A stretch of 64,000 nucleotides of DNA from Heteronotia binoei. Lineage: Eukaryota. Position numbers and translations under genes: made by a program. The notes beneath the pieces were generated by a model. It made no database searches and was not told the DNA's origin. It saw only the letters and a program-made list of their open reading frames with translations. Where the stretch lies: NCBI RefSeq assembly GCF_032191835.1, contig NC_083235.1, positions 15,562,001 to 15,626,000 of the forward strand, written 5' to 3'. Numbering within the stretch: the first letter of the stretch is position 1; each line of letters begins with the position of its first letter. Shown here one piece after another: positions 2,861-30,709 of the stretch.

Positions 2861-3103
2861 TTGTGGGGAGAGGAAGGGAAGGTGATTGTTAGCTACTCTG
2901 AGACTCCTTAGGGTAGAGAAAAATGGGGTATAAAAACCTCCTCCTCCTCTTCTTCTTTGCTCAAAATTGCATGATTTTTCTGGGCACATCAGTTTCTACT
3001 ACCCAGAATGGATAACTAGATGGTGGTGGGAGGATCATGTACCTAGGAATTGATAAGGCTTCTCATTTTCTTATGTTTTTTATCCATCACCAGTGTCGGA
3101 CTG

Positions 3104-4039
3104 ATGAATCACAAGAACATCACTCTTGTATCAGAATTCTTGCTCCGTGGCTTCTCATCCAACCCAGAGGTTGAAAAACTTCTCTTCCCATTTTTCCTCT
3201 CCATGTATCTCCTCACCCTCCTGGGGAACATAACGATAATCTTGTTGATCCGCTCTGATACGCAGCTCCGCCAGACCCCCATGTACTTCTTCCTCAGCCA
3301 CCTCGCAGTAGCTGATTTGGCTTTTGCCAGCACCGTCACCCCCAAGGTACTTGAGAATATAATCTCCCGAAAGAAGACCATCTCCTACTATGGCTGCTTG
3401 GCCCAGATGTTTGCAAACATACATATCGGCAATGCAGATAGCTACCTTTTGGCTTCCATGGCCTATGACCGCTACGTGGCCATCTGCTGCCCACTGAACT
3501 ATTCCACCATCATGAGCCACAAACGTTGCCTCCAATTGGCCACAACATCCTGGACGATCACCATGTTCCACGCCACACTTTATACCTTTTTGATGTCCCG
3601 CGTTGAATTCTGCGACCCTGGGGAAATCCCTCATTTTTACTGTGACCTTTATCCGATTCTGGATATCTCTTGCTCTGACAGCAAAGTCATAGATCTAGTC
3701 TTGCTGACTGAGGGGGTGGTGGAGATTTTGGGGCCCTTTGTTCTCATTATCATTTCCTATATGTTCATCTTCTACACCATCATAAGGATCCCATCGGCCA
3801 CTGGGAAGCGCAAGGCCTTCTCCACATGCGGATCCCACATTTGTGTGGTGGTCATGTACTTTGGTGGTATCAGCTTTGTTTATTTCAAACCAAATTCTAA
3901 TCTTGCAGAACGCCAAGATACCTGGGCCGCTATGGTATATACCATGGTCAACCCCATGGTCAACCCCTTCATCTACACCCTCAGGAACAGTGAGATGAAG
4001 GCAGCCCTGAAAAGAGTAATTAAGAAGCATTTTTGTTAA
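3104..4039 (+). CDS. Olfactory receptor, class II OR1-like, intact, 311 aa (called OR-A here)
   Basis: Has the OR motifs LQTPMYFFLSHL-like, MAYDRYVAIC, KAFSTCGSH, PMVNPFIYTLRN and an N-terminal NIT sequon. The ATG at 3104 follows the acceptor caccAG (3092-3093). The ORF-track start at 3050 lies in the intron. Confidence 0.95.
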   Translation: MNHKNITLVSEFLLRGFSSNPEVEKLLFPFFLSMYLLTLLGNITIILLIRSDTQLRQTPMYFFLSHLAVADLAFASTVTPKVLENIISRKKTISYYGCLAQMFANIHIGNADSYLLASMAYDRYVAICCPLNYSTIMSHKRCLQLATTSWTITMFHATLYTFLMSRVEFCDPGEIPHFYCDLYPILDISCSDSKVIDLVLLTEGVVEILGPFVLIIISYMFIFYTIIRIPSATGKRKAFSTCGSHICVVVMYFGGISFVYFKPNSNLAERQDTWAAMVYTMVNPMVNPFIYTLRNSEMKAALKRVIKKHFC

Positions 4040-6264: not shown

Positions 6265-6458
6265 CTGCTCAGACAGCTTCTATACTGCTATACGTTCCTC
6301 TGTCCCTTGTTTCCAGTATTATGTCTGGACTCCTTCCTTAATTCCACCTTTCATCCCTGTCGCCAAAAAAAGCCCAAAACAAAACACTAAATTAAGTGGG
6401 GAGTCACTTCTCAAGTTCAGTGTCACACAGCCAGGGCCGTTGCTAGGGTTGCCAATCT

Positions 6459-8204
6459 CTTTATGAACAAACTTGAGACGGAAAAAATTTTCAATGAAAA
6501 TTGCAATCCTCTTTTGAAAGAGATATTTTTTTTACCAGATTTATAGATGATTGCTTCTTTGTGATAAGACACACAAAATATGCAGCAGAGCTCATGAAGT
6601 GGATGAGCACAATGCATGACAAGGTGGAATTTACTTACCAGGAAAGCACTAATGATGTACCTTTTTTAGATACAGTTGTGAACAAAACTACTGAGAATAA
6701 GTTGGCAACTAAAACCTACAGAAAGCCAACAGATAGGAATGCTTTTTTACAGTATTCATCATTCATCCATGTGCTTTGAAAAAGAATATACCATATGGCC
6801 AGTTTGTAAGGTTGAGAAGAAATAGTACCCTAATGTCTGCTTATCTTGAGGATAGTGATAAGTTGGCATCTCATTTTGTTGGTAGAGGCTATCCAGAAAA
6901 AGATGTTAGGATGGCTAGAAAAAGGGCTGCTAATCTAGATAGAACACAGTTACTAAAACAGAATCCCAGGATGAGAAATACTAGATTACAATGGGAACTA
7001 GAATTTAGCAGACTATCTAGCAGAATTTGTAATGTGGTAAGGAAGCATTGGCACATTGTAAGTGATACTGGAGGTTGTGAAATGCCACCACAAATAGAAT
7101 TGCGTCGCACTTATTCCATTAGGGATAAAATGGTAAGATCTAGAGAATACCATTCGGTCACTCATACTCTTAAAGGGCACTTTGCTTGTAAAAGGTGTAC
7201 AATTTGTCATTTATCTATGAATGTCAAAGAGTATTATTTTGCTGAAAAGACTAGACCATTTTGTTCTGAATCATTACTCTACATGTGCTACCCGCTGTGT
7301 TGTGTATTTGATCATCTGTGGGTGTGGCCTAAGGTATGTTGGCAGCACTACTCGAGCCCTTAGAGTACGTATTCTGGAACACAGGAGCAGACTTAGGAAC
7401 CATGTGATTGAAGCTCCTATGGTCAGCCATTTTATGCAAGAGAATCATGACTGTGAAGATTTTTTTTTTTTCACCTTATACAAATATGAACAAACAGATA
7501 GAAATGTTGACGTGCACAAGATCCTGCTGCAGAAAGAGGCATACTGGATACACCAGTTGAATTGCATTTCTCCATATGGACTGAATATGACCAACGATTT
7601 GACATGTTTTTTTATGAATGGTCTTCTTTATAATATTATGAGTGCTGTGCATAATTTGCCTGAATAATTATAGGATTTTATATTCTTTGTATGGAATATT
7701 TTCTATGTTGTATCTGCTGTGATATAGTTTGTGTCTTTTAGCATGTTGCATTAGAAATATGTTACTTTACCTTTAAGAGGTTTGTGTAATGGCAGCTGTA
7801 AATGAGATGTTTGCCTTTTTAAACATGTTAGTTGCACCATTAGGGTGCGCAAGAAGCCACATACTGAGCTGTAGCCGATGTGAAATTGCTGCTGGAGACG
7901 CTCTGCGTCCCTCTTTTTTGAAAATTGTGTAAAGAATCTATATAATTGAATCAATATGTAAGTATGATATATTTTTTCACTGGAAGAGGGTTGGTGGTGT
8001 CTGAATGTCCTTCTGATATTTTTGTATAATATTTTCTTTTGTTAGTGGTCCCAGGTCTGATGAAGACTGGAAAGAAACAAGTACTTAATCGATTGGCTTG
8101 TCACCACACTACTTTGGGACTTGAATGTACATGTTTTGGACATTTGGACTGGTTTCTATATACTTCTTAGTAAATTGGTCACTAGCTTGCATTTTTTGTT
8201 GTGT
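6459..8204 (+). mobile_element. 5'-truncated Penelope-like retroelement (Neptune-type): RT C-terminus plus GIY-YIG endonuclease, frameshifted
   Basis: Three ORF pieces: RFIDDCF..VPFLD..TYRKPTDRN (6501-6779); KKNIPYGQFVRLRRN with a CKRCTIC linker (6776-7363); and VVYLIICGCGLRYVGSTTRALRVRILEH, the GIY-YIG motif (7221-7667). Confidence 0.9.
8048..8120 (+). ncRNA. Candidate type I hammerhead ribozyme in the Penelope 3' region
   Basis: Core CTGATGA (8057-8063) and GAAA (8074-8077). Stem III caag/cttg with a TCGA loop, then GTC (8100-8102). Stem I ggt/acc and gtccca/tgggac. Stem II (agactggaaa) does not pair well. Confidence 0.65.
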
Positions 8205-9024
8205 AATCCCCAGGTGGGGGCAGGATATCCCCTGGTTTTGAGGCCCTCCCCCTGCTTCAGGGTCATCAGAAAGCGGGGTGGGGGGAAAGGAAATGTCTGC
8301 TGGGAACTCTATTATTCCCTATGGAGACTTATTCCCATAGGAAATAATGGAGAATTGATCCACAGGTATCTGGAGCTCTGAGGGAGCTGTAATTTGAAGT
8401 AGAGGCACCAAATTTTTAGTGTAGCATCTAGTGCCTCTTTCAACCCCCCCCCCCAACTTTCAAAAAGATTGGACCAGGGGGTTCAGTTCTATGAGCTCCA
8501 AATAGAGGTGCTCCTATCCTTTATTATTTCCTATAAAGGAAGGCATTTAAAAAGGTGTGCTGTCCCTTTAAATGTGATGGCCAGAACTCCCTTGGAGTTC
8601 AATTATACTTGTCACACCTTTGCTCCTGGCTCCACCCCCAATGTCTCCTGGCTCCACCCCTCAAGTCCCCAGATATTTCTTGAATTGGACTTGGCAACCC
8701 TAGTCAGTGTTAGGCTTTTTGGCACCCTAAGTGAGGCTACCTACTTGCGCCCCCCCCCCCCATGATGGCCTCCAAGCACTCCTCAGTGCACCTGCCCTCC
8801 CCCCCCATTGGCCCCAGGTTCAAGTCCTGCCCAGTCTGGCCTTGGGAGGCTGCTGGGGCAGAAAGTGTTTCCAGGTCAACAGTCCTTTGGCACTCCAGGC
8901 AAAGCCCCTCAGCCAGATGGGGAGGGGCATGGCAGCCTCACCTGCCTGGCTCAGCGAGGACCCAGAGGAAGAGGAGAGAAGTGGCTTCCATGGGATATAA
9001 TGCCACAGAGTCCACCTTCCCAAG

Positions 9025-11477: not shown

Positions 11478-11690
11478 TGGGACAGTGGCTCAGTGGTAGA
11501 GCATCTGCTTGGTAAGCAGAAGGTCCCTGGTTCAATCCCCAGCATCTCCAACTAAAAAGGGTCCAGGGAAATAGGGGTGAAAAACCTCAGCTTGAGACCG
11601 TGGAGAGCTGCTGCCAGTCTGAGTAGACAATACTGACTTTGATGGACCGAGGGTCTGATTCAGTATAAGGCAGCTCCATATGTTCATATA
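11478..11690 (+). mobile_element. tRNA-derived SINE with CR1-like tail (Squam2-like)
   Basis: The tRNA-like head gtggctcagtggtagagc...ggttcaatcccc runs straight into ...gatggaccgagggtctgattcagtataaggcagc. Reverse tail fragments lie near 62772 and 62990. Confidence 0.75.
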
Positions 11691-14660: not shown

Positions 14661-15017
14661 CAGTGCCGGATTAAATCCTGTGGAGGCCCCTAGGCAGTCA
14701 AAATCTTAGGGGCCCCCTTGCAAATTATCTCTGAGTCTGAGTGCCTGCCACACCACCCATGGGCCTTGCTGCAGCCTGCAGGCACCTTCTTAAAAGCTCC
14801 TTTTACTAAGCTGCAAGGGAGAGGCAGAGAGAGGCAAACTTGGCAAGGATGCCAGCAGCAGCCGCACCAGGGATGTCGGGCAAAGAGCAGCTCAGTTGCT
14901 GGCTGTGCGTGAAGGCTGGGAGGGCTGCAAGCAGGGGGGAAACCTGGCCCGGGGCCCCTAAAGGTGTGGGGGCCTATAGGCCAATGCCTACTTGGCCTAA
15001 TTGTTAATCCGGCTCTG
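14661..15017 (+). mobile_element. Non-autonomous hAT element
   Basis: TIRs cagtgccggattaa / ttaatccggctctg and TSD ctcggact/cttggact. Inverted family member at 48907-49270. Confidence 0.85.
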
Positions 15018-15229
15018 CTTGGACTTGGTTCTGAGTGGGTCTCAAGACCTAGTGAAAGATGTAGAGGTTGTTACACTAGTTGGGAACAGTGACCACAATG
15101 CTATTAAGTTCAGCATTCAGATCAAAGGAAAGCTATTCCTTAAGTACAAAACTGTAGCCTTCGATTTCAAAAGTGAGAACTTTACAAAAACGAGGGGAAT
15201 AGTAAAAGGAAGCTGAAGGGCAAAAGATA

Positions 15230-15500
15230 AGAGGAAGAAGAGGAGGATGGATTTACACTCACCCTTCACTCAAAGTCTCAGAGCAGCTTACAATCTCCCT
15301 CCTTTCCTCTCCTCACAACAGATACCCTGTGAGGCAGGCGGGGCTGAGAGAGCTCTGAAAGAACTGCTCTCAAGAGAACAGCTGTGGGAGAACTGGACTA
15401 ATCCAAGGTCACCCAGCAGGTTGCATGTGGAGTAGGAGTGGGGAATCAAACCCGGTTCTCCAGATTAGAGTCTGCCGCTCTTAACCACTACGCCAAACTG
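15230..15500 (-). mobile_element. MIR-like SINE (Squam3-like)
   Basis: Reverse copy ending ttaaccactacgccaaactg. Confidence 0.8.
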
Positions 15501-15842
15501 AGGGAAAAATCAGCATGGCTTCCACAAAGGGAAGCCCTGCCTCACCAACCTTTTGAAGTTCTTTGAGAAAGCAAACAAGCATGTAGGTAACAGTGACCTC
15601 ATAGACACTATATACCTGGACTTTCCAAAGGCTTTTGACAAGGTACCTCGCCAATGACTCTTGAATAAACTTAGCAGTCATGGGATAAGAGGACAGGTTC
15701 TCTTAATGGATTTCAAACTGGTTAAAGGACAAGAAGCAAAGAGTAGGATCAATGGGAAGTTCTCACAGTGCAGCAGTGGGGTCCATAAGGATCAGTACTA
15801 GGGCAGGTACTATTTAATTCATTCATAAATGCTCTGGAACTA

Positions 15843-16687
15843 ATAGGTTTTGCAATTCCAATGTTACCAGAGAATTACTTAATGGGTAAGTGGTTAGATT
15901 TAGACATTAGTAAGAGAACTAAAAAACTGATATCTATCTTAGTATCTACTGCTAGACTAACTATTGCTTTAAAATGGATTGACAAATCTCTACCTACTAT
16001 AGACATTTGGCAAACAAAATTAAGGGAACACTTTATTTTGAGCAAAATTTCTTACCAAACCTCAAATGCTCTGTTAGAACATTATGAATCAAAATTTGTA
16101 GCAATTTGGTTTCCGGAAACAAGTTATATGACTGAAAATAATATCTTAAGAGAGAACCCATTGTATAAAACTATGAGCGTTTTCGCACTGACCTTACTTG
16201 GCAGCGACGTCCCTCTTCACTGCGCAGCGTCTGCGCGGATTTCGCACACGTTGCTCCGCAGAACCCGGAAGAGCCGCAAAGTCCCGCGGCTTTTGCATCG
16301 CAAATGTAAACTGTTTTTTGGCCACTTTACATTTGCGACGCAAAAGCCGCGGGACTTTGCGGCTCTTCCGGGTTCTGTGGAGCAATGTGTGCGAAATCCG
16401 CGCAGACGCTGCGCTGTGAAGAGGGACGTCGCTGCCGAGTAAGGTCAGTGCGAAAACGCCCTATGATTTATTTTTAAAAAGAAAAAAAAAACAAGAAAAT
16501 GACTATTTGTAACTTCTGTGCTTTACAACTGAATATTACTACATAGTAATATTACTACTATATTACCTGTGCTTGAAATATAGTTATAATGAAGTTATGT
16601 ATAATAGGTAATTGTAATCATTTGTTTTTTGTAATTTGCAACTGAACTTTAAATTGCAATAAAAATATTACATTTTGAAAAAAAAAA
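15843..16687 (+). mobile_element. 5'-truncated L1 (ORF2 C-terminus, 3' UTR, poly-A)
   Basis: Translates to ISILVSTARLTIALKW...IW. Followed by aataaa and an A-run to ~16687. Flanked by an imperfect duplication aaatgctctggaacta / aagtgatttggaacta. Confidence 0.75.
16175..16461. mobile_element. PIF/Harbinger-like palindromic MITE
   Basis: 287-bp foldback with TIR G(A/G)GCGTTTTCGCAC and a 3-bp TSD TAT (16172-16174, 16462-16464). Confidence 0.8.
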
Positions 16688-17330
16688 GTGATTTGGAACT
16701 AAGGGAGAGTAGTGTCGTGGCCAAGTTTGCAGATGACACAGAATGATTCAGGATAATGAAACCCAAGACTGACTGTGAAGTGACAGTACACATAACATAC
16801 AATACGGTATGCACTTATTAACACTGACTGGAACAAATAAACCAATGAAATCAGACCAGACTGCAAAGTGTACTACTAAGAGTTTACTGTTTTATATGTA
16901 ATGTCTACTGCACAGTGTCTGATCTCTATCACCTAAAGGCCCATTTAGTTTTAATCAACATTGAAAGTGCACCGTATTATAAATGATATATTTTGCTTAA
17001 TCTTTTTAATGTATGCTTTTCACTTCAACTTTTTAGGTACTCTATTCCATTTTGGGGTGGGGTTTTTGCCCTTTCTTTGGCGTTGCTGTGCCTCACAATG
17101 GAGACCCAGAAATTACCCAACAAGTGCTCATCAGAAGATAAATGCAAAATCGCTAATTCTGCACAAAAATGAAGATATATTCTCTAGCTTGGGCATGCAA
17201 TACATGACATTCAGAATCCCCAAGTTCCGTCACACTATTAGTGTCTAGGTTTCCTTGGTTACCCATAGTAATTAGATTTGAACTTGGTTTAAGTCTTCAG
17301 TATAGGCATCAGATACCCAGTTGCTGGATA

Positions 17331-17660
17331 AGAACATAAGAGAAGACATGTTGAATCAGGCCAATGGCCCATCCAGTCCAACACTCTGTCACAAAGTGGC
17401 CAAAACCCCCAGGTCCCATCAGGAGGTCCACCAGTGGGGCCAGACACTAGAAGCCCTCCCATTGCTGCCCCCCCCAAGCACAAGAATACAGAGCATCACT
17501 GCTCCAGACAGAGTTCCAACAATGCACTGTGGCTAATAGCCACTGATGGACCTCTGCTCCATATGTTTATCCAATCCCCTCTTTAAGCTGTTAATGCTTG
17601 TAGCCGCCACCACCTCCCGTGGCAGTGAATTCCATGTGTTAATCACCTTTTGGGTGATTA
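17331..17660 (-). mobile_element. CR1 LINE 3' end
   Basis: Reads aagaacataagagaag...ggccaatggcccatccagtccaacac. Confidence 0.85.
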
Positions 17661-18064
17661 AGAGAAGATGGATGGAAAATTATATGTGATGTACAAATGC
17701 TGTAATAAATCCCAAAGGCTGTTTCTTTAAACAAAACCAAATAGAGGGGCAGTGTTATGATAGACAAACATGAATTCAGAATGCCGGGTCAGAGCATGGT
17801 GGAGGATTTGGAACAAAAAGCAGGGGGGGGGGGGCGGGGAGTGAACAGATAAGTGGTTAAGTCTGCCGTGATAACTCATAGCATCTCTGCTCAAAACTGC
17901 ATCTTTTCAAACGGATGTGTTTGCTTGGCAGCTCAGTCTCTACTATGCAAATTGGTATCTAGATGACAGAGGAGGGTTGTGTGCCTAGAAATCTGTCAGC
18001 CCAAACTTTGGTTGTAGGCCTCTACTTTTCTTCTTATTCTCACCCTTACAGCTGCGTCGGACCA

Positions 18065-19021
18065 ATGAATCACAAGAACACAACTCCGGTCTCCGAATTC
18101 TTCCTCCGTGGATTCTCCTCTCAACCAGAGGTTGAAAAACTCCTCTTCCCACTTTTCCTCTTGATGTATTTGCTCACCCTCCTGGGGAATGTCACCATCA
18201 TCTTGCTGATCCGCTGTGACAGGCACCTTCTCCAAACCCCCATGTACTTCTTCCTCAGTCACCTTGCAGTAGCTGATTTGGGGTTTGCCAGTACCATTGT
18301 CCCCAAAACGCTACAGAACTTGTTATCTCAGAGAAAGACCATCTCCTACCATGGCTGTCTGGCCCAGATGTTCTTCTACATACATATCGGCAATGCAGAT
18401 AGCTATCTTCTGGCTTCCATGGCCTACGACCGCTACGTGGCTATCTGCAACCCACTGAACTATTCCATTATCATGAATCACAAATGTTGCCTCCAGCTGA
18501 CATCTATATCCTGGACTCTCACTATGTTTCACTCATTGATTTATACCTTTTTGATGTCCCATGTTGAGTTCTGTGATCCTGGGGAAATCCCCCACTTTTT
18601 TTGTGACCTTTATCCTCTTCTGGATGTCTCTTGCTCTGACTCTTACCTGATAGATCTAGTCTTGATGACTGAGGGGATAGTGGAGATCCTGGGGCCGTTT
18701 GTGCTCATTATCATTTCCTATGCATTCATCTTCTTCTCCATCTTGAAGATTCCATCTGCCACTGGGAAGCGCAAGGCTTTCTCCACATGTGGGTCCCACA
18801 TCTGTGTGGTGCTCATGTACTTTGGTGGTATCAGCTTTGTTTATTTCAAACCGAATTCTAATTTGGCAGAACGCCACGACACCTGGGCTGCTATGATGTA
18901 CACCATGGTCAACCCCATGGTGAATCCCTTCATCTACAGCCTCAGGAACACTGAGATGAAGGCAGCCATGAAAAGAGTCATTAGGAAGCATTTTTCATTA
19001 ATTTCCAAAGGGCTGAAGTAG
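18065..19021 (+). CDS. Olfactory receptor, class II OR1-like, intact, 318 aa (OR-B)
   Basis: All OR motifs present, NTT sequon, acceptor ttacAG at 18050-18051. The C-terminus is 7 aa longer than in OR-A, -C and -D. Confidence 0.95.
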   Translation: MNHKNTTPVSEFFLRGFSSQPEVEKLLFPLFLLMYLLTLLGNVTIILLIRCDRHLLQTPMYFFLSHLAVADLGFASTIVPKTLQNLLSQRKTISYHGCLAQMFFYIHIGNADSYLLASMAYDRYVAICNPLNYSIIMNHKCCLQLTSISWTLTMFHSLIYTFLMSHVEFCDPGEIPHFFCDLYPLLDVSCSDSYLIDLVLMTEGIVEILGPFVLIIISYAFIFFSILKIPSATGKRKAFSTCGSHICVVLMYFGGISFVYFKPNSNLAERHDTWAAMMYTMVNPMVNPFIYSLRNTEMKAAMKRVIRKHFSLISKGLK

Positions 19022-19092
19022 TGTTTTCTGGGAGATACCTTGTTGGGTATCCCATTTTTTCTGGGAGATATGTCATTGGATATCCCATGAGG

Positions 19093-19276
19093 CAGGGGTT
19101 TTTTTTTGGTATTAGGAAGTCCTTTGCATTTTAGGTCACACCCCCTGATGTAGCCAATCTTCCAAGAGCTTACAGTAGGCCCTGTAAGAAGAGCCCAGTA
19201 AGCTCTTGGAGGACTGCCTACATCAGGGGTGTGTGGCCTAATATGCAAAGGAGTTCCTGCTACAAAAAAAGCCCTG
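19093..19276. mobile_element. Palindromic CAGGG-family MITE
   Basis: Foldback sharing its core with 447-618. TSD not preserved. Confidence 0.8.
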
Positions 19277-20105
19277 GTACTCGTCCTGCCTTATTGGAAG
19301 AATGCTGAGGGCTCAGTCAGTTATTTCTTTAAAAGGAATATTATTGGTTTAATGGTACATTGGATTTATATCCTGTCCTTCCCACCGAAGCAGGCTCAGG
19401 GTGGCTCACAACCAGTAAAATCACAGTAACATTCCAACACATAATACATCATAATTAGAATTCAAAACATTAAAACAGTCAGGTGCTAATATCATTTGAT
19501 ATCATTTTATTTCCCACGACGTTCAGTATTTCATTCCTTACTTACTATATTGGTTTTTCAGAAACAATTAAAGGCTAGCCGAATTAGTGTTGTCTTACAG
19601 GCCTTCCAACTTAAATATATATAACTTGGAGGAAAATGCAACCCGGGTGATTATATCCTTATTCTTTGTTTTATGCTAGTCATATATGTGATAGCTCCCA
19701 GAATGAACCTTACAAGTTCTATTCTCTTTTTTCCACACCCAATGCTATTTCTCTTTTCTGCTATCCAGTCTCTTTAGCTATATGACAACCCAGATAGTTT
19801 CCTTCCTGCAACACTCTCCTCTCCCCTATCATGACTGAACCCTCGCCTTGGTTCCACCCTTCAATGTGAACACAATTACCACAACATACTAGGGATGGGC
19901 ACAAATTGAACCATGTGCATACCATAGAGCAATGGCATCAAACATGTGGCCTGAGGACCAGATCAGGCCCCCGGAGGGCTCCAGTCAGGCCCACGAGCAA
20001 CTCACTGTCATCTGCTGCCTTCTTTCTCTCTCTTGCTTCCTTCTTTCTTTGCCAGGCTTGCTCAATTGCGCAGGAGCTACAGGGCAAAGCCTCTATTTTG
20101 GTGTA

Positions 20106-20385
20106 GAGAGCCGGTTTGGTGTAGTGGTTAAGTGTGCGGACTCTTATCTGGGAGAACCGGGTTTGATTCCCTACTCCTCCACTTGCACCTGCTAGCATGG
20201 CCTTGGGTCAGCCATAGCTCTGGCAGAGGTTGTCCTTGAAAGGGCAGCTGCTGTGAGAGCCCTCTCCAGCCCCACCCACCTCTCAGGGTGACTGTTGTGG
20301 GGGAGGAAGGGAAAGGAGATTGTGAGCAACTCTGAGACTCTTCGGAGTGGAGGGCAGGATATAAATCCAATATCTTCTTCTTCTC
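20106..20385 (+). mobile_element. MIR-like SINE (Squam3-like)
   Basis: Full head and (TTC)n tail. Confidence 0.85.
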
Positions 20386-20999
20386 CATTGGCAAACCAGA
20401 ACATGAAGCAACTTATGTACAAAAGTTCGCAATGCCCAGCCATTTCGTGTTTTCCCGTGGGTCTTAGGCTCAAAGCATTTGCCAGGAGATTTCTGCAATG
20501 AATGCCAATAAATCAAAAGTAGGTTTGCAACTTACAGACACACACCTGAACAATACCTGAACAGCATACTCAAGATTGCTACAGCACAGACATTGTCTCC
20601 AGATTTTGATGCAATAATTCAGAGCAAGAGGAGTCATTTATCAGAGACTGTTAAATAAACAAAACATTACAAGAGTGCTAATGTTTTAAGCATGTTTTAT
20701 TTTAAGTTTTTTTTTAAAAAATCTTTAATTTGTCTGTGTCCTTTATATATCTCCAGTACCTGGCATCACATTTTATGATACACTTTAACTGGCCCAACAA
20801 GGTCTCATTTATGACAGATCTGGCCCTGATAGCAAATAAGTTCAATACCCCTGACATAGACACAAGGAGAAACAAAAGTCACTTCCCAGTTATTACTTCC
20901 CAGACTCCAGGAATTTCTGAAGCCAGCATTGGCAATGCTACTACTAAGACAAGTGGGACAAGATGGCTATAGCTTCGGTTCCTAAAAAATAGTCATTGC

Positions 21000-21193
21000 C
21001 AGTGTTCCCTCTAAGCTGAGTTCGCGTGAGCTAGCTCACCGATTTTTAGCCTTCAGCTCACACATTTTTGTCTTAGCTCGGGAAAAACGGCCTCAGAGCA
21101 AATTAATATATGCAGGAGCTCACAATTTAAATGCCAGTAGCTTACAAAGTAGAATCTTTGCTCACAAGATTCTGCAGCTTAGAGGGAACACTG
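21000..21193 (+). mobile_element. hAT MITE (CAGTGTTCCCTCTAAG TIR family)
   Basis: TIRs present, TSD gtcattgc/gtcattac. Confidence 0.85.
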
Positions 21194-21588
21194 GTCATTA
21201 CCAGTCTAGGAGAGTCAGATTTTTTTTTTTAAATACAAGACTCACTGAGCTACGATGACGCCTTCTCCTAGAGCGAACAGTGCAAAGCATTTTGTTTGCA
21301 CTGGGGGGAGCACCCAGCACAAGAAAAAAGCAACTGCAGCTTTGCACTTGGTTTCAGCAGCACCTCCTGCTTCATGCTCAAACAGCCTACTTTGCACTAT
21401 TTGGGCTTAGCAAGCTTGGCATTTGGTCCAGACAGCCCAGTATTTTCACTGACTATTTGGGGGAAATTGAAAAAAAATTACCAGGCACTGAAATGTCCAG
21501 TCCGTTTTAAGTTAATCTCAGAGAGAAAATACCAGACTGTCTGGGTCAATACTGATCACCTGGCAACCTGACTTAGTAGTGTTATCAT

Positions 21589-21759
21589 CAGGGGTGGAAT
21601 TTTAGCAGGAGCTGCTTTGCATATTAGGCCACACCTCCCTGATGTAGCCAATCCTCCAAAAGCTTACAAGGCTCTTTTTTGTAAGCTCTTGGAGGATTGG
21701 CGACATCAGGGGTGTGTGGCCTAATATGCAAAGGAGCTCCTGCTAGAATTCCATCCCTG
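21589..21759. mobile_element. Palindromic CAGGG-family MITE
   Basis: Foldback, same family as 447-618. Confidence 0.85.
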
Positions 21760-22075
21760 AGTGTTGTCATCTACCTACCAAAATGATTTTAAGGTAGGCG
21801 AGGATGCCGTATGAAGTCACCACTCTTGATTTTTCGTCTCTTTTCCAAGTGAGCTATGGGGAAAGGAACTGGACCAGGATCTCCCAGTTCACCTTCTCAG
21901 GATTCTCTGTCCCACAAAGATTCCATGACATCAACAGGTTTTTTGCCCTTTGACATTTGGCAGTGCCTGATAACAATTCCTGCAGACCCTCTCTGACATA
22001 AATCTTCCTCCGCTCCTTCATGTGCTTCTTCCTCAGTCGCTTGCCACTGGATGATCTTGGTTTTATCTCTGTCAT

Positions 22076-22517
22076 CAGGGGTCATTTTGGAGAAAAACAG
22101 GTGGCGGAGCTCATTAGCATAATTCATTAGCAAATGCCACCCCCCCACCAGCCAAAAGCAACCCGAGACAAAAAAGGAGAGCCCCGGGAGAGCGAGGCCT
22201 GCTTGGTCTGGCAAGAGATCCAGCCAGCCCAAACAGGCCTCACTCTCCCAGGGCTCTCCTGAGTCAAAAGGCCAACAAGCTACCTGCTGCCCCAAATCAC
22301 GTAAGAAGTGCAGAAAGGATGGCTTGGGCTTCTACAGAAGTTAATGAGGGCTGCTGTGGGCGTGGCAAAGCCCCTGGTGGCTGGCTGGCTGACCGGTCTC
22401 CTAATCCAGGGATTGTTATGCAGCTGCCCCTGCTATTCAATGGACAAGGTAGGTGGAGAGGAGAGGGGGGCCATCAGAAAGGCTCAGGAGCTGTGCTCCT
22501 GCTGAATCTGACGCCTG
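22076..22517 (+). mobile_element. Non-autonomous hAT element
   Basis: Perfect 8-bp TSD TCTGTCAT. Homologous to 5803-6264. Confidence 0.85.
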
Positions 22518-22849
22518 TCTGTCATTACCCCAAAGACACTGCACTGATTTCTAAAAAAGTATCTCTTGTGGTGGGCATTTTGCATGGTTGTATTTCTGCT
22601 GGATTTTCATTCTACCACTTAGCCCAGGGCTCCTCAGATGCCATCATGACTAGATGGCTCCTAAAGGTCAAGAGTGAGGGGCTAGAGGAGGAAAAGGGGG
22701 TTATCCCTCTTTTTAAAACCCATATGTTCCATTTGGTCACTTCAGTTGCTATTTGCTTTATATATCCTTCCTCCCTAACATTTCCCTCTTGCCAAACATA
22801 TTAATACTAGTAGCCACTGATAGATTTTTCCTCCATGAATCTATCCAAT

Positions 22850-23371
22850 CTAGCCTTCCCAATCCCCAGGTCCCAGCAGGGGATCCCCCGATTTTACAGG
22901 CTTCCCCCCTCCCCCAGCCAGCTGGCCAGCGGGGGAAGCCCCACCCCCACAGCTATTATGCGCCTCCACAAACGATTCCCATAGGGAATGATGGGGAATT
23001 GATCTGTGGGTATCGGGGGCTCTGGGGGGGGGGCTGTTTTTTTAGGTAGAGGTGCCAAATTTTCAGTATAGCATCTAGTGCCTCTCCCCAAAATACCTTC
23101 CAAGTCTCAAAAGGATTAGGCCAGGGGGTCCAATTCTATGAGCCCCAAAAGAGGATGCCCCTATCCTTCATTATTTTCTATGGAAGGAAGGCATTTTAAA
23201 AGGTGTGCTGTCCCTTTAAATGTGATGGCCAGAACTCCCTTGGGGTTCAATTATGCTTGTCACACCCTTGTTCCTGGCTCCGCCCCAATGTCTCCTGGCT
23301 CCACCCCCAAAGTCTCCTGGCTCCACCCCCAAAGTCCCCAGATATTTCTTGAATTGGACTTGGCAACCCTA
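22850..23371 (+). mobile_element. TAGGGTTGCC-TIR DNA transposon derivative
   Basis: Colinear with 8205-8702, ends ggcaacccta. Confidence 0.75.
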
Positions 23372-23472
23372 ATCCAATCTCCTTTTAAAGCCATTTATTC
23401 CTGTGACCGTCACTACATCCTCTGGCAGTCAATTCCGCATTTGAATCACTCTGGGTAAAGAAAGAACCGGGT

Positions 23473-24390
23473 GGGTAGCCATGTTGGTCTGAAGTAACAG
23501 AATGAAGGTAGAGCCCAGTCGCACCTTTAAGACCAGGGGTGGAATTCTAGTAGCTTACAAAGTAGAATTTTTGCTCACAAGACTCTGCAGCTTAGAGGGA
23601 ACATTGGTCATTACCAGTCTAGGAGAGTCAGTTCTTTTGCATATTAGGCCACGCCCCCCCTGATGTAGCCAATCCTCCAAGAGCTTACAAGGCTCATTTT
23701 TTGTAAGCTCTTGGAGGATTGGCTACATTAGTGGGGTGTGGCCTAATATGCAAAGGAGCTTCTGCTAGAATTCCATCCCTGTTTCAGACCAATAACATAC
23801 GGTATTTAGAACAACATATAGTGATTGTCACCTTCGTGCTTGGGGGGAGGCAGATGGGCATCAGAGGCCGCTAACAGATGGCTAGCTCAGGGCAGAATCA
23901 AGCTGACCCAGAAGTGAGCTGGCTGGAAAAGGAGTGCCCAGAAGCGTCCAGACGGCATGCAGTCTGCCCCCAGAACAGGGATGGTCTGTGTGTGCATGTG
24001 TAGATGTGCTTTTTAGATCCGTCTACCTACCGTGCCTGGGGTAGCTTTAACCTCCCGTCTGTAAGCAGCCATAAGGTTAACTTTCCCGCAAGAAAAGGTT
24101 CTCTTACACACTTATCTCCTATTTATTACAACCTGCTATTTATTGCATCAAATGTCGTTTCCCCTTAACTGGATCCATAGAGCTGTGTTGACCCTGTGCA
24201 CTTGGCTTGTTGTCCCTGCTTTGTCTCAAGATGTTTACATCATGTTATATATTAATTCGTTGTTTCAACCTTGCCTATCAATGTGAATGCTTTTCTCCCA
24301 TTTCATTGTATCTGAAGAAGTGTGTGTGTAACACATGAAAGCTTATACCTCGAATAAAGCTTTGTTGGTCTTGAAGGTGCGACTGGACTC
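23473..24390. mobile_element. Penelope-like remnant with inverted termini
   Basis: gagcccagtcgcacctttaagacca (23511-23535) is inverse to tggtcttgaaggtgcgactggactc (24366-24390). A CTGAAGA..GAAA motif lies at 24312-24340. Confidence 0.55.
23534..23780. mobile_element. CAGGG-family MITE carrying an 83-bp captured segment
   Basis: MITE arms are intact except for an insert at 23549-23631 that matches 21136-21218. Confidence 0.8.
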
Positions 24391-24804
24391 TTATTTGGAC
24401 CTGAGCCCAATTTGGGAAAGGGCAGAATATAAATCCACAGAAATAAATAAATAAATACAGTTTTATTTTATTCTGGGTAAAGAAGTCTGAAAGACAATGC
24501 CCTACAGGTGGACAAGATCATGCAGGAACTGTAATTAAATTATCTTCTGGAAGTACTAATCTGGGATCACTAAACTTTATTCCAAGGTTATGTACCTAAC
24601 TGGACTTGTTGTTTTGAAAAACTGAAATTTAATAGTTCTTCCCAACCGCAAACATGGAATCAAAATGCTAAGCCTGGACTTCCAAAAGGAAATGAGGATG
24701 GGTAAAAGCTCTATACCCCTCCACCTTCTGTCTCTGTTTGGGGCAAATTCATATAGATCCTGTGCAGCAACCCCATGGACAATATTTATTTTCCAAGGAG
24801 GACA

Positions 24805-25193
24805 AGCTGTAAACAGAGGCTCATTTGTTAAGCCCTCGTGGTGATGTCTCAGAACTGTCGTCTAGAGAATCACTAGAGAGGGAACCCAGCGGAGCTGTCC
24901 TCCAACCTGGGAATCACAGCTCCAAAGACCTGAAGACATGAACAAAAACTGGCGGTGCTGCTGATGGTGCCGTCTCTGGATACAGCAAAGTGCACGCCAG
25001 ATCTACTAAGAAGGAGGAAGAAGACTGTGTTTCCAAGAAGGAACATGCAAATGGTCTTTCCTGCCTCCTGAATTCTCTGTCCGAGATATCCTATATCCTT
25101 CAGACTGACAACATCAGCAGCAGATGCATAAATTCTGCTTCTGCTGCAAACCAAAAGATTTTTCCGCCCACTGCTTTCATCCACCAGGTAAGT
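24805..25193 (+). promoter_or_regulatory. Putative OR promoter plus 5' non-coding exon (module M3), probably for OR-C
   Basis: Contains ctgtaaacagaggctcatttg...gtctcagaac...ctagagaatc and the donor cag|GTAAGT (GT at 25188). Confidence 0.55.
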
Positions 25194-25239
25194 CAGTGTT
25201 GGTGTGAGTGACTCAGCATGCCTGGTCATGGGGGGCGGG

Positions 25240-25548
25240 TTGTGCTACATCACTCTAAGTGTATATAGGTGTTATCTCCTTGAATGGGATGCCTCTCTTG
25301 GTCTTAAGCTGGGAGCTGCTGTCTGACCCCTCCTCTCTGTTCCTTTGTCCTCTGCCTCCCTGCACATGGCCTTCCATGGAGACACACGTCTCTGTAGCTC
25401 TCTCCTGTGGAGGCAGTGCCCTCATACTCCCACATGCATGATGCCTTTTGCTGGCCATTTCTGATAGGGAAAGTATTCTTTAGATTAGGCTTCTCTCTCT
25501 TCTTCTGATTTCAACCTGAATGTGAACTGGATCTATTTGAATAAATGT
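25240..25548 (+). mobile_element. LTR-like repeat, homologous to 1286-1660
   Basis: TATA-like gtatatag and AATAAA; colinear with the reverse copy at 1.3-1.65 kb. Confidence 0.5.
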
Positions 25549-25954
25549 AAGAGAGATTCCCCACTTGGCTTGTTCCCGTCTTGTTGCTCCTTTTCCCGTG
25601 GGACTGCTGCTGGATTTCGCACAAACTGCCCCAGTCCGGCGAGTTGCCCTGCCTCTCTTATGTCCAGACCTTTATTGGCATAAAAGCAATCATGATTTGC
25701 AATCAAGAGTAGGTACAAAGACCTGAAGTATAGTAAGAACAACGCATAAAGCAATCAATTCAATGGCAGCCAATAATACTAATCAAAAGCAGACACCCAG
25801 CAATTAAAATACAGAAGTATGCCTAGATTTAATTTTCTAGGCTTCTGCTAAGAAATCCACAACACATGTAGTAATGTGGGGATTAACATTTTCTAAAAAA
25901 GCAGGTTAGAGTTTTCCTTTTAGCTCTTCAAGTTCCCTCTGCAGTAGGCAGGAT

Positions 25955-26053
25955 CCTCTGAAAAACGGTATCTCTAAGGAGATGAGACACTTGTTGGCAC
26001 ACTTCATCACAGCAGCTAGGATCCTTCTGGCGCAGAGATGGAAATGGCAGGAG

Positions 26054-26100
<47 letters not shown>

Positions 26101-27063
26101 TTATTTATATCCCGCCCTCCCCGCCGAAGCAGGCTCAGGGCGGCTAACAACATTAGATCAATACATTAAGTTATACAATAATGTTTAAAAACAATAACTG
26201 ATTTAACAATTTAATTAAAATTCTAAAATTAATAAAATTAACATCCTGGTGCTATTCCAACAGATGGTAAAATTACTTAAGCAGTCTCTCTCTTTTAATC
26301 GGTGAAGGCCATCTCGAAAAGGATGGTCTTGCAAGCCCTGTGAAATTGTTCAAAGTTCCACAGGGCCCGCATTTCTTCCGGGAGCTGGTTCCATAGGTGT
26401 GGAGCCACAACAGAGAAGGCCCGCGTGCGGGTACTCTGTAGTTTTACCTCTTTCGGCCTGGGAATGGTCAGCAGGTTCTTCCCTGTTGACCTCAGTGCTC
26501 TCTGGGGTTCATATGGGGAAAGACAGTCCCTCAGGTAGGCAGGTCCTCGGCCATATAAGGCTTTAAAGGTGATAACCAGCACTTTGTAACGAATCCGGTA
26601 AAATGGACTTGATGGGAAAAGTTCTAGAGACAGCAGAGCTGGACTTTCTATCCCAGCTGATGGCTGGGAAATCTAAAGAAGAAGCAAGAAAATATTGGAT
26701 GAAATTGAATGCTTGGTTGGATACTCAAGACTTCTAAGATTCTCTGGTGTGAACTGATTTCTTTTTGCTTTTTTCCCTGTATTTTATATTATAAAATTCA
26801 CCTTTACTAGAATTGTCAAAATTATTAGATAATAACAAAAGACTTATACTATAAAATGTTATAATGGATTATATGCAGCTTAGACAAAATGATATGGGAC
26901 AATTTCTGCAAAGAAAATACTGTAGAATCATACTTGTATTTTTTGAAAGTATTTTATGCAAAAAAAGTTCAGAATGTATTGTGCTTTTACCTTTCTTTTT
27001 CCTTTATCCCTATCCCCCATTTTTTTTCTGAAACTAATAAAACTTTTAAAAACTGAAAAAAAA
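25955..27063 (+). mobile_element. 5'-truncated L1 3' end, interrupted by an L2
   Basis: Translates to HFITAARILLAQRWK | MGKVLETAELDFL..W..WLDTQDF*. Followed by aataaa and an A-run at ~27055-27063. Confidence 0.7.
26056..26602 (-). mobile_element. L2-clade LINE 3' fragment with (TTGA)n tail
   Basis: Translates to VITFKALYGRGPAYLRDCLSPYEPQRALRS. (TCAA)n repeat at 26056-26098. Confidence 0.85.
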
Positions 27064-27522
27064 ACCCTAGTATCTGTCTGCTGCAGAGGGAACTTGAAAA
27101 GAGGTGGGCAACTCGCTGGCCTGTGGCAGTTTGTGCAAAGCCCAGCAGCAGCCCTGTGGGAAAAGGAGCAAGGAGACCAGAACAAGGTGAGTGGGGAATC
27201 TATCTAAGTTTAATCCCCCCTGCAATCTACTTCTAGGGAGATACTGTGCTCAGTATCATGCTTCTATGACTGGGCAAACTCTGCTTTATTAGCCAAACAT
27301 CCCAATAGTAACAGCGCTTCCAGCACTGGCACACTTCTAGAAAACTTCCAAAGCCTCCTCCAGTTCTTATACATTCTCTGCAATAAAATAAAATAAAATA
27401 AAATCCATATATTGGGAATCTAGTAATGCAAGAAAAAAATTGCAACCACATTCCCTATCTTGAGTATACAAATATACATCCAGAATCCTAAGGCACCCCT
27501 TGGGCATGACTATGGGAATGAA

Positions 27523-27723
27523 CAGGGCTTTTTTGGTCGAAAAAGCTCAGCAGGAACTCATTTGCATATTAGGTGACACCCCCCTGATGTCACCATTGTT
27601 TCACATAGGGCTTTTTTGTCCCTACCAAAAAAGCAGGAATTCCTTTACATATTAGGCCACACCCCCTGACACCAAGCCGGCCGGAACAGTGTTCCTGTGC
27701 GTTCCTGCTCAAAAAAAGCCCTG
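27523..27723. mobile_element. CAGGG-family MITE
   Basis: Perfect TSD GGAATGAA. Confidence 0.85.
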
Positions 27724-28244
27724 GGAATGAAGGAGAAAACAGGCAGTCGAGAAAGTGTTAAATTCTCTGTGTCGGAATCTGACTTGCTAGTCAAAAATGC
27801 ATGATTTCAAATGAATGGGCCTCCTGAGCACATTAGTGGCCTTAGTACTGGACTGAGGACTTTTCAGTTTAGAAGAATCAACCAGGGGGTAGCATGGTAG
27901 AGGTTTATAAAGTTATACATAGGATGGAGTGAGTTGACAAAGAGACATTTTTTCTCCCTCTACCGAAATACTAGAATTCGAGGGCATCCAACGTGGCTGA
28001 CGGGCATTACATTCGATTGGATAAAATGAAATACTATTTTTGCACTTTTACACGTGGAGGACTTCTGCATGCAACCTCAGTCCCAACCAGAGAGGGAAGA
28101 GCGCAGGTGGAAGCAGAGGAGGGCACCGAATCATGTATTACTGTTACACTATTGAAAGGCTGGATCTGTGGTCCCTACGCTGTGAAGTTCCTCTTATGGA
28201 AACTGACCATGTGATGCAGGGATGGAGGAATCAGTCAGGTATTG

Positions 28245-28670
28245 CTGTTGTTCAGTAGCACAGTTGAATCTGACTCTTTGAGACCCCATGCCAGGCCCTC
28301 CTGTCTTCCACCATCCTCCACAGCCCTCTCAAATTCATGTTTGTTACATCAGTAACGCTGTCCAGCCATCGCATCCTTTGCCGCCCCCTTCTTCTTTTGC
28401 CTTCTGTCCTTCTCAGCATCAGGATCTTCTCCAGTGAGTGCTCTCTTCTCATTGGATGGCCAAAGTATTTGAGTTTCAGCTTCAGCATCTGACCTTCCAG
28501 GGAACAGTCTGGGTCGATTTCCCTTAGGACTGACTGATTGGATCTTCTTGCAGTCCAAGGGGCTCTCAAGATTCTTCTTCAGCACCACAGCTTGAAAGCA
28601 TCTATTCTTCTGTGCTCGGCCTTCCTTATGGTCCAACTCTCACAGCAATACATTACTACTGGGTATAGTG
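28245..28670 (-). mobile_element. RTE-BovB LINE 3' fragment
   Basis: Translates to PWTARRSNQSVLREI..CSLEGQMLKLKLKYFGH..RGRQRMRWLDSV, with a (CAA)n tail. Confidence 0.9.
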
Positions 28671-28869
28671 TCAGGTCAGGTATAGTGAAGAGAAAATGGA
28701 GGAACAGAGTGAACCTGTGCATCAGGGGAAGGTCTGCTGGCCCCCAAGCCCTATGTTTGACACTCCTTTGTTTTCTTGTTATTGGGTGCATGGTGACTTA
28801 CATAGATCAGGCTTTCCACAGTTAAGTGTAATGCAATGCACAATGATACAAAGCATTTGAACTTTAAAT

Positions 28870-29745
28870 ATATGTTGGTGGAGTCTGAAGCTGAGAGGAA
28901 AAGAGATCTTGGGGTCATGGTGAACAGCTCATTCAAAATGTCAACCATTGTGGAAAAAGGCAAACTCCATGATGGGAATTATCAGGAAAATAATAGCAGA
29001 TAAAATAGCCAAATATCACAGAGGCCTGGGGCAGATCTATTCTGTGGCCTCATTTGAACTACTGTGTACAGTTCTGGTCGAAGAGGATACTGCAGAACTG
29101 GAAAAAGTGAAGAAGGGGTAACCAAGATGATTAGCAGGTTGGTACACCTTTCAGAGGATGGTGGAAGACAGGAGGGTCTGGCCTGAGTTGATCCATGGGG
29201 TTGCAAAGAGTCAGACTCAACTGTGCGACTGAACAACAACACACCTTTCTTAGCAGGAAGGGCTAAAATGTCTGGGACTTTTCAGTGTAGAAAAAAGAAG
29301 ACTAAGGGGGAATGTGATAGAGGTTTCTAAAATTATGCAAGGGGTGGGAAAAGTAGGTACTTTTTCTCTTCCTCCCAAAATACTAGAGCACAAGGACAAA
29401 CAATGTCTTTTATGAGCTACAGTAGATAAATTCAGGCTGGACAAAAGGAAATACTTGAATTGTTGAAATATTTGAATGGTTGAATTCACTACCAGTTGAA
29501 GTAGTGATGGCCGCAAGCATAGGCAGCTGTAAGCAGGAATTGGATAGATACATGGAGAATAGATCCCTCAGTAGATCCTAGAACTTCCATGTACTACAGC
29601 AGTGAACCTCTGAATAACACTGCTAGGAAGCAATATGTTTGATTGGTCCTCCAGGTCAACTGGTTGGCCATCATGTGAAACAAGATGCTGAACTAGATGG
29701 ACCACTAGTCCGATCCAGCAGGCCACTTCTTATGTTCTTATGTTA
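28870..29745 (+). mobile_element. CR1 LINE 3' part abutting the OR-C acceptor, with a BovB tail inserted at ~29158-29243
   Basis: Contains gagatcttggggtcatggtgaacagctc and ends ccgatccagcaggccacttcttatgttcttatgtt. The BovB tail is gttgcaaagagtcagactcaactgtgcgactgaacaacaac. Confidence 0.8.
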
Positions 29746-29773
29746 TTCTGTTCCCTACAGTAACATCTGCCTA

Positions 29774-30709
29774 ATGAATCAAAAGAACGTAACTCAGATC
29801 TCTGAATTCTTGCTTCATGGTTTCTCATCCCAGCCAGAAGTTCAAAGGGTTCTCTTCCTGCTCTTCCTCTCCATGTATGTACTCAACCTCTTGGGGAATA
29901 TAACCATCATTTTGCTGATCCGCTGTGATATGAAACTCCTACAAACACCCATGTACTTCTTCTTGAGCTATCTTGCAGCAGCTGATATGGGTTTTGCCAC
30001 CACCATCATCCCGAAGACACTGGAGAACTTACCGTCTCACAAAAAGTCCATCTCATACTGTGGTTGCCTGACACAAATGTTTTTCTACATATATTTTGGC
30101 AATGCAGATAGCTACCTGCTGGCTTCCATGGCCTATGATCGCTATGTGGCAATCTGTCAGCCAATGCACTATTCTACCATGATGAGCCACAAACGTTGCC
30201 TCCAACTAGCCACAGTGTCCTGGACTATCCCCATGATCCATTCTTTGCTTTATACCATTTTGATGGTCCGCGTTGAGTTCTGCAACCCCGGGGAGATCCG
30301 TCATTTTATCTGTGACATTTATCCTGTTCTGGAGGTGTCTTGCTCGGACAACAAAGTCATAGATTTTGTCTTGATGACGGAGGGACTAGTAGAGATCCTG
30401 GGGCCATTTGTGCTCATTCTCATTTCCTACGCGTTCATCTTCTACTCCATCATGAGGATTCCGTCTACAATCGGAAAGCGCAAGGCCTTCTCCACGTGTG
30501 GGTCCCACATTTCTGTGGTGGTCTTGTTCTATGGCGGTGTGAGCTGGGTCTATTTCAATCCAAGTGCCAAGAACCCAGGCCTCCAGGACACGGTTGCAAC
30601 TGTGATGTATACCATGGTGATCCCCATGCTGAATCCCTTCATCTACACCCTCAGGAACAATGAGATGAAGTTGGCCATGAGGAGAGTCATTAGGCAGCAT
30701 TTCTATTAA
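29774..30709 (+). CDS. Olfactory receptor, class II OR1-like, intact, 311 aa (OR-C)
   Basis: All OR motifs present, including FYG in TM6 and PMLNPFIYTLRN. NVT sequon; acceptor ctacAG at 29759-29760. Confidence 0.95.
   Translation: MNQKNVTQISEFLLHGFSSQPEVQRVLFLLFLSMYVLNLLGNITIILLIRCDMKLLQTPMYFFLSYLAAADMGFATTIIPKTLENLPSHKKSISYCGCLTQMFFYIYFGNADSYLLASMAYDRYVAICQPMHYSTMMSHKRCLQLATVSWTIPMIHSLLYTILMVRVEFCNPGEIRHFICDIYPVLEVSCSDNKVIDFVLMTEGLVEILGPFVLILISYAFIFYSIMRIPSTIGKRKAFSTCGSHISVVVLFYGGVSWVYFNPSAKNPGLQDTVATVMYTMVIPMLNPFIYTLRNNEMKLAMRRVIRQHFY

Follow-up and report, generated by a model that had tools for sequence, protein, structure and literature searches.

A hammerhead-derived motif without helix II, adjoined by an intron, in the 3' tail of a multicopy gecko Penelope-like element

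Hammerhead ribozymes are well known from Penelope-like elements (PLEs), and their role in these elements is still unclear. A PLE copy in the gecko Heteronotia binoei bears on this problem, as it carries what appears to be a hammerhead lacking one of its helices. The copy lies in a stretch of 64,000 nucleotides (nt) of contig NC_083235.1 (RefSeq assembly GCF_032191835.1, positions 15,562,001 to 15,626,000, forward strand), referred to here as the window. An initial annotation, made from the letters of the window, had described a type I hammerhead at positions 8048 to 8120, in the 3' region of the element, and had cautioned that stem II is unpaired in this copy, which might be decayed. Is the missing helix II a defect of one old copy or a trait of the family, and does the motif still work as a ribozyme? 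We find that the hammerhead-like layout is present as first read, that helix II was, on the evidence of whole-genome reads, already missing from the family's source copies, and that an 88-nt intron, lost from many copies, directly adjoins the motif. Hammerheads in PLEs are a known kind of ribozyme and are common in this genome; what is new is a helix-II-less build found family-wide, together with the adjoining intron and its loss.

Reading the sequence bore out the letters and layout given for 8048 to 8120, along with the assignment to type I, to the sense strand, to the Penelope 3' region and to a predicted GUC site at 8102 (Table 1). All conserved core nucleotides are in place: C3 to A9, G12 to A14, the A15.1-U16.1 pair and, at the H17 position, C17. 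Helix I closes the motif at both ends (3 bp plus 6 bp), and helix III is closed by A15.1-U16.1 and comprises 5 bp, with one further U-G pair possible. Between A9 and G12, where the helix II hairpin belongs, no pair can be formed within 8064 to 8073, either in a stem search or in folding. The linker that occupies this place is not self-complementary, and pairing arms and repeats in the tail are short and at chance level only. Its complement (TTTCCAGTCT) has a single perfect match, which is the linker itself on the opposite strand, and 12 matches with one mismatch against 7.1 expected, which is the chance level. An alternative register that uses the first GAAA, at 8070, gives no better helix II or fit, and the fit is likewise not improved by placing U16.1 at 8098, by a U3-A8 core variant, by reading the minus strand or by a type III permutation. 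No further CUGANGA...GAAA candidate occurs in the PLE on either strand.

To place this copy within its family, we used raw whole-genome reads of H. binoei (runs X7, X8, and X9, all from one sample, together with the contigs of one run), placed on positions 7000 to 8400 at 80% likeness or more. The per-position differences reported here are those listed in that tally, every one of which has a share of about 65% or higher in at least one run. Depth per run is 25 to 115 over the open reading frame (ORF) and 440 to 740 over 8034 to 8174; it climbs from about 60 to about 700 along the noncoding tail toward the 3' end and stands at tens of thousands from 8205, within a short interspersed element (SINE). 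If the letters per run amount to 0.5 to 1.3 times a genome of 1.5 to 2.5 Gb, the tail is present in roughly 500 to 1,000 copies. Within the motif, the tally lists differences at 8111 and 8119 alone, neither of them in more than about 5% of raw reads. Its entries for 8048 to 8120, the linker at 8064 to 8073 included, contain no insertion, deletion, or majority change, and a majority change there would presumably have been listed. Because the same motif letters recur in several hundred copies, the read evidence assigns the absence of helix II to the copies from which the family spread, and not to private decay. The earlier caution about a decayed copy is thus not upheld. The initial annotation had also proposed building the family consensus to see whether stem II pairs; among the differences listed in the tally of reads there is no insertion from which a helix II could form.

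The reads also revealed an intron. The strongest joint in them, 7957 to 8046, skips 88 nt bounded by GT and AG and is carried by 186 (X7), 125 (X8), and 147 (X9) reads. The skipped segment runs from GTAAGT to ttttcttttgttAG, with a branch-like CTGAT site about 27 nt before its 3' end. Depth within it is 177 to 241, and the intron-bearing and intron-less forms sum to the depth of the flanks. Corrected for reads able to span the joint, intron-less copies make up about 55 to 60% of the family and intron-bearing copies about 40 to 45%, such that the intron is retained in genomic copies, as is characteristic of PLEs. That both forms exist is a record of reverse copying from spliced as well as from unspliced RNA. 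Helix I begins 2 nt downstream of the 3' splice site.

This arrangement recalls the Penelope element of Drosophila virilis, in which a 75-bp intron of the pseudo-long terminal repeat (pLTR) has its end mapped to the 5' end of helix I (PMC4209133; PMC8557442); the pLTR intron organization of PLEs is discussed in PMC8557442. Both elements have a short pLTR intron directly before helix I that is retained in genomic copies, and the intron-then-hammerhead layout of the virilis pLTR may therefore extend to a vertebrate. The two differ in the ribozyme, which in D. virilis has a helix II of 6 bp, a helix I of 2 bp, and a small palindromic helix III, and in the relation of ribozyme to splice site, since the gecko helix I begins 2 nt past the splice site and is unaltered by splicing. 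They differ further in that more than half of the gecko copies are intron-less. A literature search, which was not exhaustive, found no vertebrate report of a pLTR intron with a hammerhead in this layout or of an intron polymorphism.

Table 1. Features of the gecko Penelope-like element and its hammerhead-derived motif (positions in the window; a dot marks features given no strand)
Feature	Position	Strand	Basis or remark
Left target-site duplication, AATC	6454-6457	.	End of SINE 5' part, ...gggttgccAATC
Penelope-like element, 5'-truncated, 1747 bp	6458-8204	+	Empty paralogous block, split SINE, duplication, protein matches
ORF remnants, three pieces in two frames	6501-7667	+	C-terminal part of the reverse transcriptase, linker, GIY-YIG endonuclease
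Noncoding 3' tail (pLTR part), 537 nt	7668-8204	+	Read depth
Intron, spliceosomal type, 88 nt, GT..AG	7958-8045	+	Read joint 7957 to 8046
Hammerhead-derived motif, type I	8048-8120	+	Letters, numbering, stem search, fold, shuffles
Helix I, outer 5' strand, gtccca	8048-8053	+	Pairs with tgggac 8115-8120, 6 bp
Helix I, inner 5' strand, ggt	8054-8056	+	Pairs with acc 8103-8105, 3 bp
Core box CTGATGA (CUGAUGA), C3 to A9	8057-8063	+	Standard hammerhead numbering
Unpaired purine-rich linker AGACUGGAAA (agactggaaa), 10 nt, in the place of helix II	8064-8073	+	Stem search, fold
Core box GAAA: G12, A13, A14, A15.1	8074-8077	+	Standard hammerhead numbering
Helix III, ACAAG/CUUGU, 15-nt loop	8077-8101	+	A15.1-U16.1 plus caag 8078-8081 with cttg 8097-8100
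Palindrome AAUCGAUU (aatcgatt), off-center in helix III loop	8087-8094	+	Letters
GUC site; U16.1 is T8101, C17 is C8102	8100-8102	+	Numbering
Predicted cleavage site, C17 (8102) / A1.1 (8103)	8102-8103	+	Hammerhead numbering only
Helix I bulge, 9 nt	8106-8114	+	Between the 3-bp and 6-bp parts
Right target-site duplication, AATC	8205-8208	.	Abundant SINE resumes, AATCcccagg

How does the motif compare with known hammerheads? In the minimal hammerheads of metazoan PLEs, helix I is short (4 to 5 bp), helix II spans 6 to 8 bp, with a base between A9 and 10.1 and a highly conserved G10.1-C11.1 pair, and helix III has 0 to 2 bp (Cervera & De la Pena 2014, PMC4209133). Their palindromic center lets two copies form one long helix III (PMC4209133; PMC6765202), and cleavage of the dimer has been reported by Lunse et al. 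2017, as far as the summary in PMC6765202 conveys it. The gecko motif shares with these ribozymes the type I topology, the CUGANGA and GAAA boxes, a place on the sense strand of the tail or pLTR, hundreds of copies per genome, and a palindrome near helix III. Unlike them, it has no helix II, a helix III of 5 bp, and a 15-nt loop, which is the reverse build, and its description in the initial annotation as a minimal hammerhead with a palindromic stem III loop does not hold. Of their helix II features, only the unpaired base has a possible counterpart, an extra A after A9. Nor does the palindrome serve a minimal, dimer-forming helix III: its center is offset by 1.5 nt from that of the ACAAG/CUUGU stem, which forbids a continuous extended helix III in a dimer and allows a loop-loop contact at most. 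The dimeric stem III that the palindrome had been thought to enable is excluded on the same ground.

Other comparisons are closer in one respect or another. The motif falls within the "HHR_core" class, in which CUGANGA and GAAA are separated by 7 to 17 nt and the stems lie outside the descriptors (Craig et al. 2021, PMC8557442); the spacer in the gecko is 10 nt. As in the HHR_core motifs of the Naiad elements, the boxes are spaced without stems that fit the descriptors and occur in a PLE family that multiplies, whereas the gecko motif retains good helices I and III and a UC site. The elements themselves differ, as the Naiad endonuclease is N-terminal and the hosts are invertebrates, while the gecko GIY-YIG domain is C-terminal, as in canonical PLEs. 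The Poseidon element PAc of Anolis carolinensis is likewise a lizard PLE with a hammerhead at the boundary of pLTR and ORF and with the 3' end of the insertion downstream of the hammerhead; compared by description only, it differs in having stems I and II, a loop II, and cleavage that is aided by protein. Its hammerhead cleaves only when the PAc protein is added, and catalytic mutants insert normally in vitro (PMC11167929). Engineered minizymes, in which stem II is replaced by a linker, cleave with lower efficiency (PMC10192333). They resemble the gecko motif in the core, in intact helices I and III, and in a short unpaired linker in place of stem II; they differ in being man-made, with linkers of usually a few nucleotides and reduced activity. 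We know of no natural minizyme-like hammerhead.

Folding lends the motif no thermodynamic support. The stability of 8040 to 8130 (91 nt) has a z-score of 0.24 against shuffles, and for 8046 to 8126 the hammerhead fold reaches -8.3 kcal/mol against a minimum free energy (MFE) of -17.7 kcal/mol, with a hammerhead-compatible share of the ensemble of about 6 x 10^-5. In the predicted MFE structure, the CUGAUGA box is buried because CCAGGUCU pairs with AGACUGG in a hairpin.

We lean, with some reserve, toward reading the motif as a family-wide, crippled descendant of a PLE hammerhead, with poor cleavage or none, that is probably tolerated because cleavage is unneeded for insertion. The source elements of the gecko family would already have carried the helix-II-less build. 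In the lone RNA, cleavage is most likely very poor or absent, because helix II is lacking and the CUGAUGA box lies in a predicted competing hairpin. The family would have reached several hundred copies regardless, because ribozyme cleavage appears to be dispensable for PLE insertion, as suggested by the PAc mutants and by the Naiads, which thrive without canonical hammerheads (PMC8557442). The sequence and the reads show the motif, its place in a PLE, its family-wide state, and the intron with its loss in many copies; low or absent activity and the dispensability of cleavage are what we infer. Several points weigh against it. In the family consensus the core is perfect, and the GUC site is preserved along with two good helices, which is more than one expects of a long-useless ribozyme, and the build, with its long helix III and no helix II, looks remodeled and not simply deleted. 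By analogy with minizymes that carry a linker for stem II and still cleave, if less well (PMC10192333), the motif may retain some activity; by analogy with PAc, which cleaves only with protein, predictions for naked RNA may mislead. Minority variants of the motif, in 10% up to about half of the copies, could also exist beyond the differences listed.

Some of these points also favor the most serious competitor, a possible but distinctly less probable reading in which the motif is an active hammerhead despite the lack of helix II, like a minizyme that arose in nature, and cleaves at 8102/8103 weakly or when aided by the element's protein or by a second RNA as partner. The stable helix III would then make unnecessary the dimer on which other PLE hammerheads rely. 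Core, GUC site, and helices I and III that are intact in several hundred copies would fit such a variant, as would the reduced cleavage of minizymes (PMC10192333), the protein-assisted hammerhead of Anolis PAc (PMC11167929), and the intron-adjacent position shared with D. virilis Penelope. What counts against it is that the linker is unpairable and lacks the highly conserved G10.1-C11.1 (PMC4209133), that it is neither self-complementary nor matched by a complement in the tail, and that the predicted ensemble strongly disfavors the hammerhead fold. In its boldest form, which we consider unlikely, a vertebrate PLE family has rebuilt its hammerhead as a natural minizyme with no helix II and a long, dimer-free helix III that cleaves at 8102/8103, perhaps with the element's protein. 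If that were true, splicing and ribozyme cleavage would act on the same short leader, and no earlier hammerhead from nature would have been shown to function in the absence of helix II. A family of several hundred copies with a helix-II-less hammerhead is thus either more evidence that cleavage is dispensable for PLEs or, if the motif cleaves, a sign that nature uses a design so far known only from engineered minizymes.

The reads and the shuffles count against two further explanations. One holds that the family has a normal hammerhead with helix II and that the window copy alone has decayed. The window copy has indeed drifted on the ORF side, where 20 positions over 7000 to 7704 carry another letter in all or most reads, and it shows frame-breaking 1-nt differences as well; moreover, differences are known only among those listed. 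Helix II, however, would need an insertion of several bases, none of which is among those listed, and at a depth of 440 to 740 per run 8048 to 8120 shows no majority difference or indel in that list. We therefore regard private decay as very improbable. Least credible of all is a chance look-alike, with the family's real ribozyme, if any, elsewhere. We evaluated it with a descriptor that demands both core boxes, UH, a helix I of at least 3 bp, and a helix III, with no helix II required. Dinucleotide-shuffled windows of 64 kb, scanned on both strands, yield 0.54 matches each, or 0.04 with a helix III of at least 4 bp; that about 0.5 sites are expected per shuffled window from the loose descriptor, and that the pattern was picked after being seen, speaks for chance, as does a fold no more stable than that of shuffles. 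A PLE hammerhead should lie in the tail and in sense orientation; with the scan confined to that strand of the 537 nt, only 69 of 20,000 shuffles contain the descriptor, and 6 of 20,000 do so with a helix III of at least 4 bp (0.03 to 0.35%). The position of the motif behind an intron, as in D. virilis Penelope, and the lack of any other CUGANGA...GAAA candidate on both strands of the element also argue against chance. The 8-nt palindrome is weaker evidence, since shuffling alone creates one in 2% of cases when the loop is permuted and in 14% when the whole motif is.

The Rfam hammerhead models, which the initial annotation had named as a check, might seem to support a chance origin, as they gave no match to the motif at the gathering score or at an E value of 10 or less in a search of 401 bases. 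A control within the window shows how little this says. A scan of our own returned a textbook PLE minimal hammerhead of another family at 24308 to 24350 (+), in which GTAT, CTGAAGA, an extra A, a 6-bp helix II (GTGTGT...ACACAT, first pair G-U), GAAA, GC, TT, and ATAC follow one another, with a palindromic AGCT center and U17. Rfam likewise found no hammerhead match there. The Rfam models do not cover the PLE minimal hammerhead class, and because this textbook example was missed too, the negative result at 8048 to 8120 is uninformative, and the models were rejected as a test.

The element that carries the motif is a Penelope-like element, in agreement with the initial annotation. It starts about 25 codons ahead of the reverse transcriptase (RT) motif FIDD, and its ORF remnants contain this motif, a linker of the CxxCxxC type (GHFACKRCTIC), and a GIY-YIG region (YVGSTTRALRVRILEH), in the order expected of a canonical endonuclease-bearing (EN+) PLE, whose single ORF has the RT followed by a C-terminal GIY-YIG. 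A phmmer search with a 148-amino-acid piece against 1.84 billion representatives returned 2611 matches at an E value of 1e-3 or less, the best at 49% identity, and the long matches carry RVT_1 and GIY-YIG domains. None of the broken ORF pieces of the window copy scored against Pfam, a word search with the 148-amino-acid piece gave no match, and the 22-mer CTGATGAAGACTGGAAAGAAAC was absent from metagenome and viral contigs in an exact-pattern scan. In an alignment, the proteins of relatives end in LSCFL, and the ORF of the window copy extends 17 residues beyond this point. Within the PLE tail or pLTR the motif has the sense orientation; it begins 381 nt past the stop codon, and from the predicted cut to the 3' terminus of the inserted DNA there are 102 nt. 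The AUG within the CUGAUGA box (8060) opens a frame of 36 codons (8060 to 8170, +) with the basic start MKTGKKQ...; a coding reading of the tail was rejected, as no frame resembles PLE proteins. The PAc ORF of Anolis begins immediately at its hammerhead, which bears on the true ORF start of the gecko family.

The ends of the insertion follow from the SINE that it splits. Read ends that precede 8205 share the consensus ...ACTAGGGTTGCC, from which it follows that the intact SINE reads GGGTTGCC-AATCCCCAGG; the split SINE and this consensus together set the insertion at 6458 to 8204, with AATC as a 4-bp target duplication. A paralogous block, 22072 to 22524 and 22861 to 23369, is without the PLE.

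The read tally holds further observations on the family. Over 7705 to 8204 no majority difference from the family is among those listed, unlike 7000 to 7704; short copies with the tail alone may form a subfamily of their own, nearer to the window copy than those that carry the ORF. Depth doubles at about 7846, from about 195 to about 435 in X7, which may mark a favored point of 5' truncation or the start of a repeated pLTR part. Family reads also depart from the window copy in length: about 40 to 50% lack 1 nt at 7607, a third to half of the small number that cover 7665 have one more A behind it, and about half carry 9 additional nt, GTTTGTGGT, behind 7726. The SINE-like repeat on either side of the element (6272 to 6457 and 8205 to 8400) is very abundant, with a depth of about 15,000 to 30,000 per run, and shows many joints of the "opposite strands" kind at 8244 to 8291, nearly all of them in run X7 alone.

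The surroundings of the element agree with the initial annotation, which had placed the motif between two olfactory receptor genes of the same strand: it is flanked by an ORF at 3050 to 4039 (+), which matches Pfam 7tm_4, and by one at 17963 to 19021 (+), a putative olfactory receptor. Elsewhere in the window, the tail that follows the hammerhead at 24308 to 24350 has a 26-nt inverted match to 23510 to 23535, and a run of N occupies 41561 to 41691. A tRNA match at 11479 to 11550 (+; Rfam RF00005, 44.3 bits) has several nonstandard acceptor-stem pairs and could be the head of a tRNA-derived SINE or a tRNA pseudogene.

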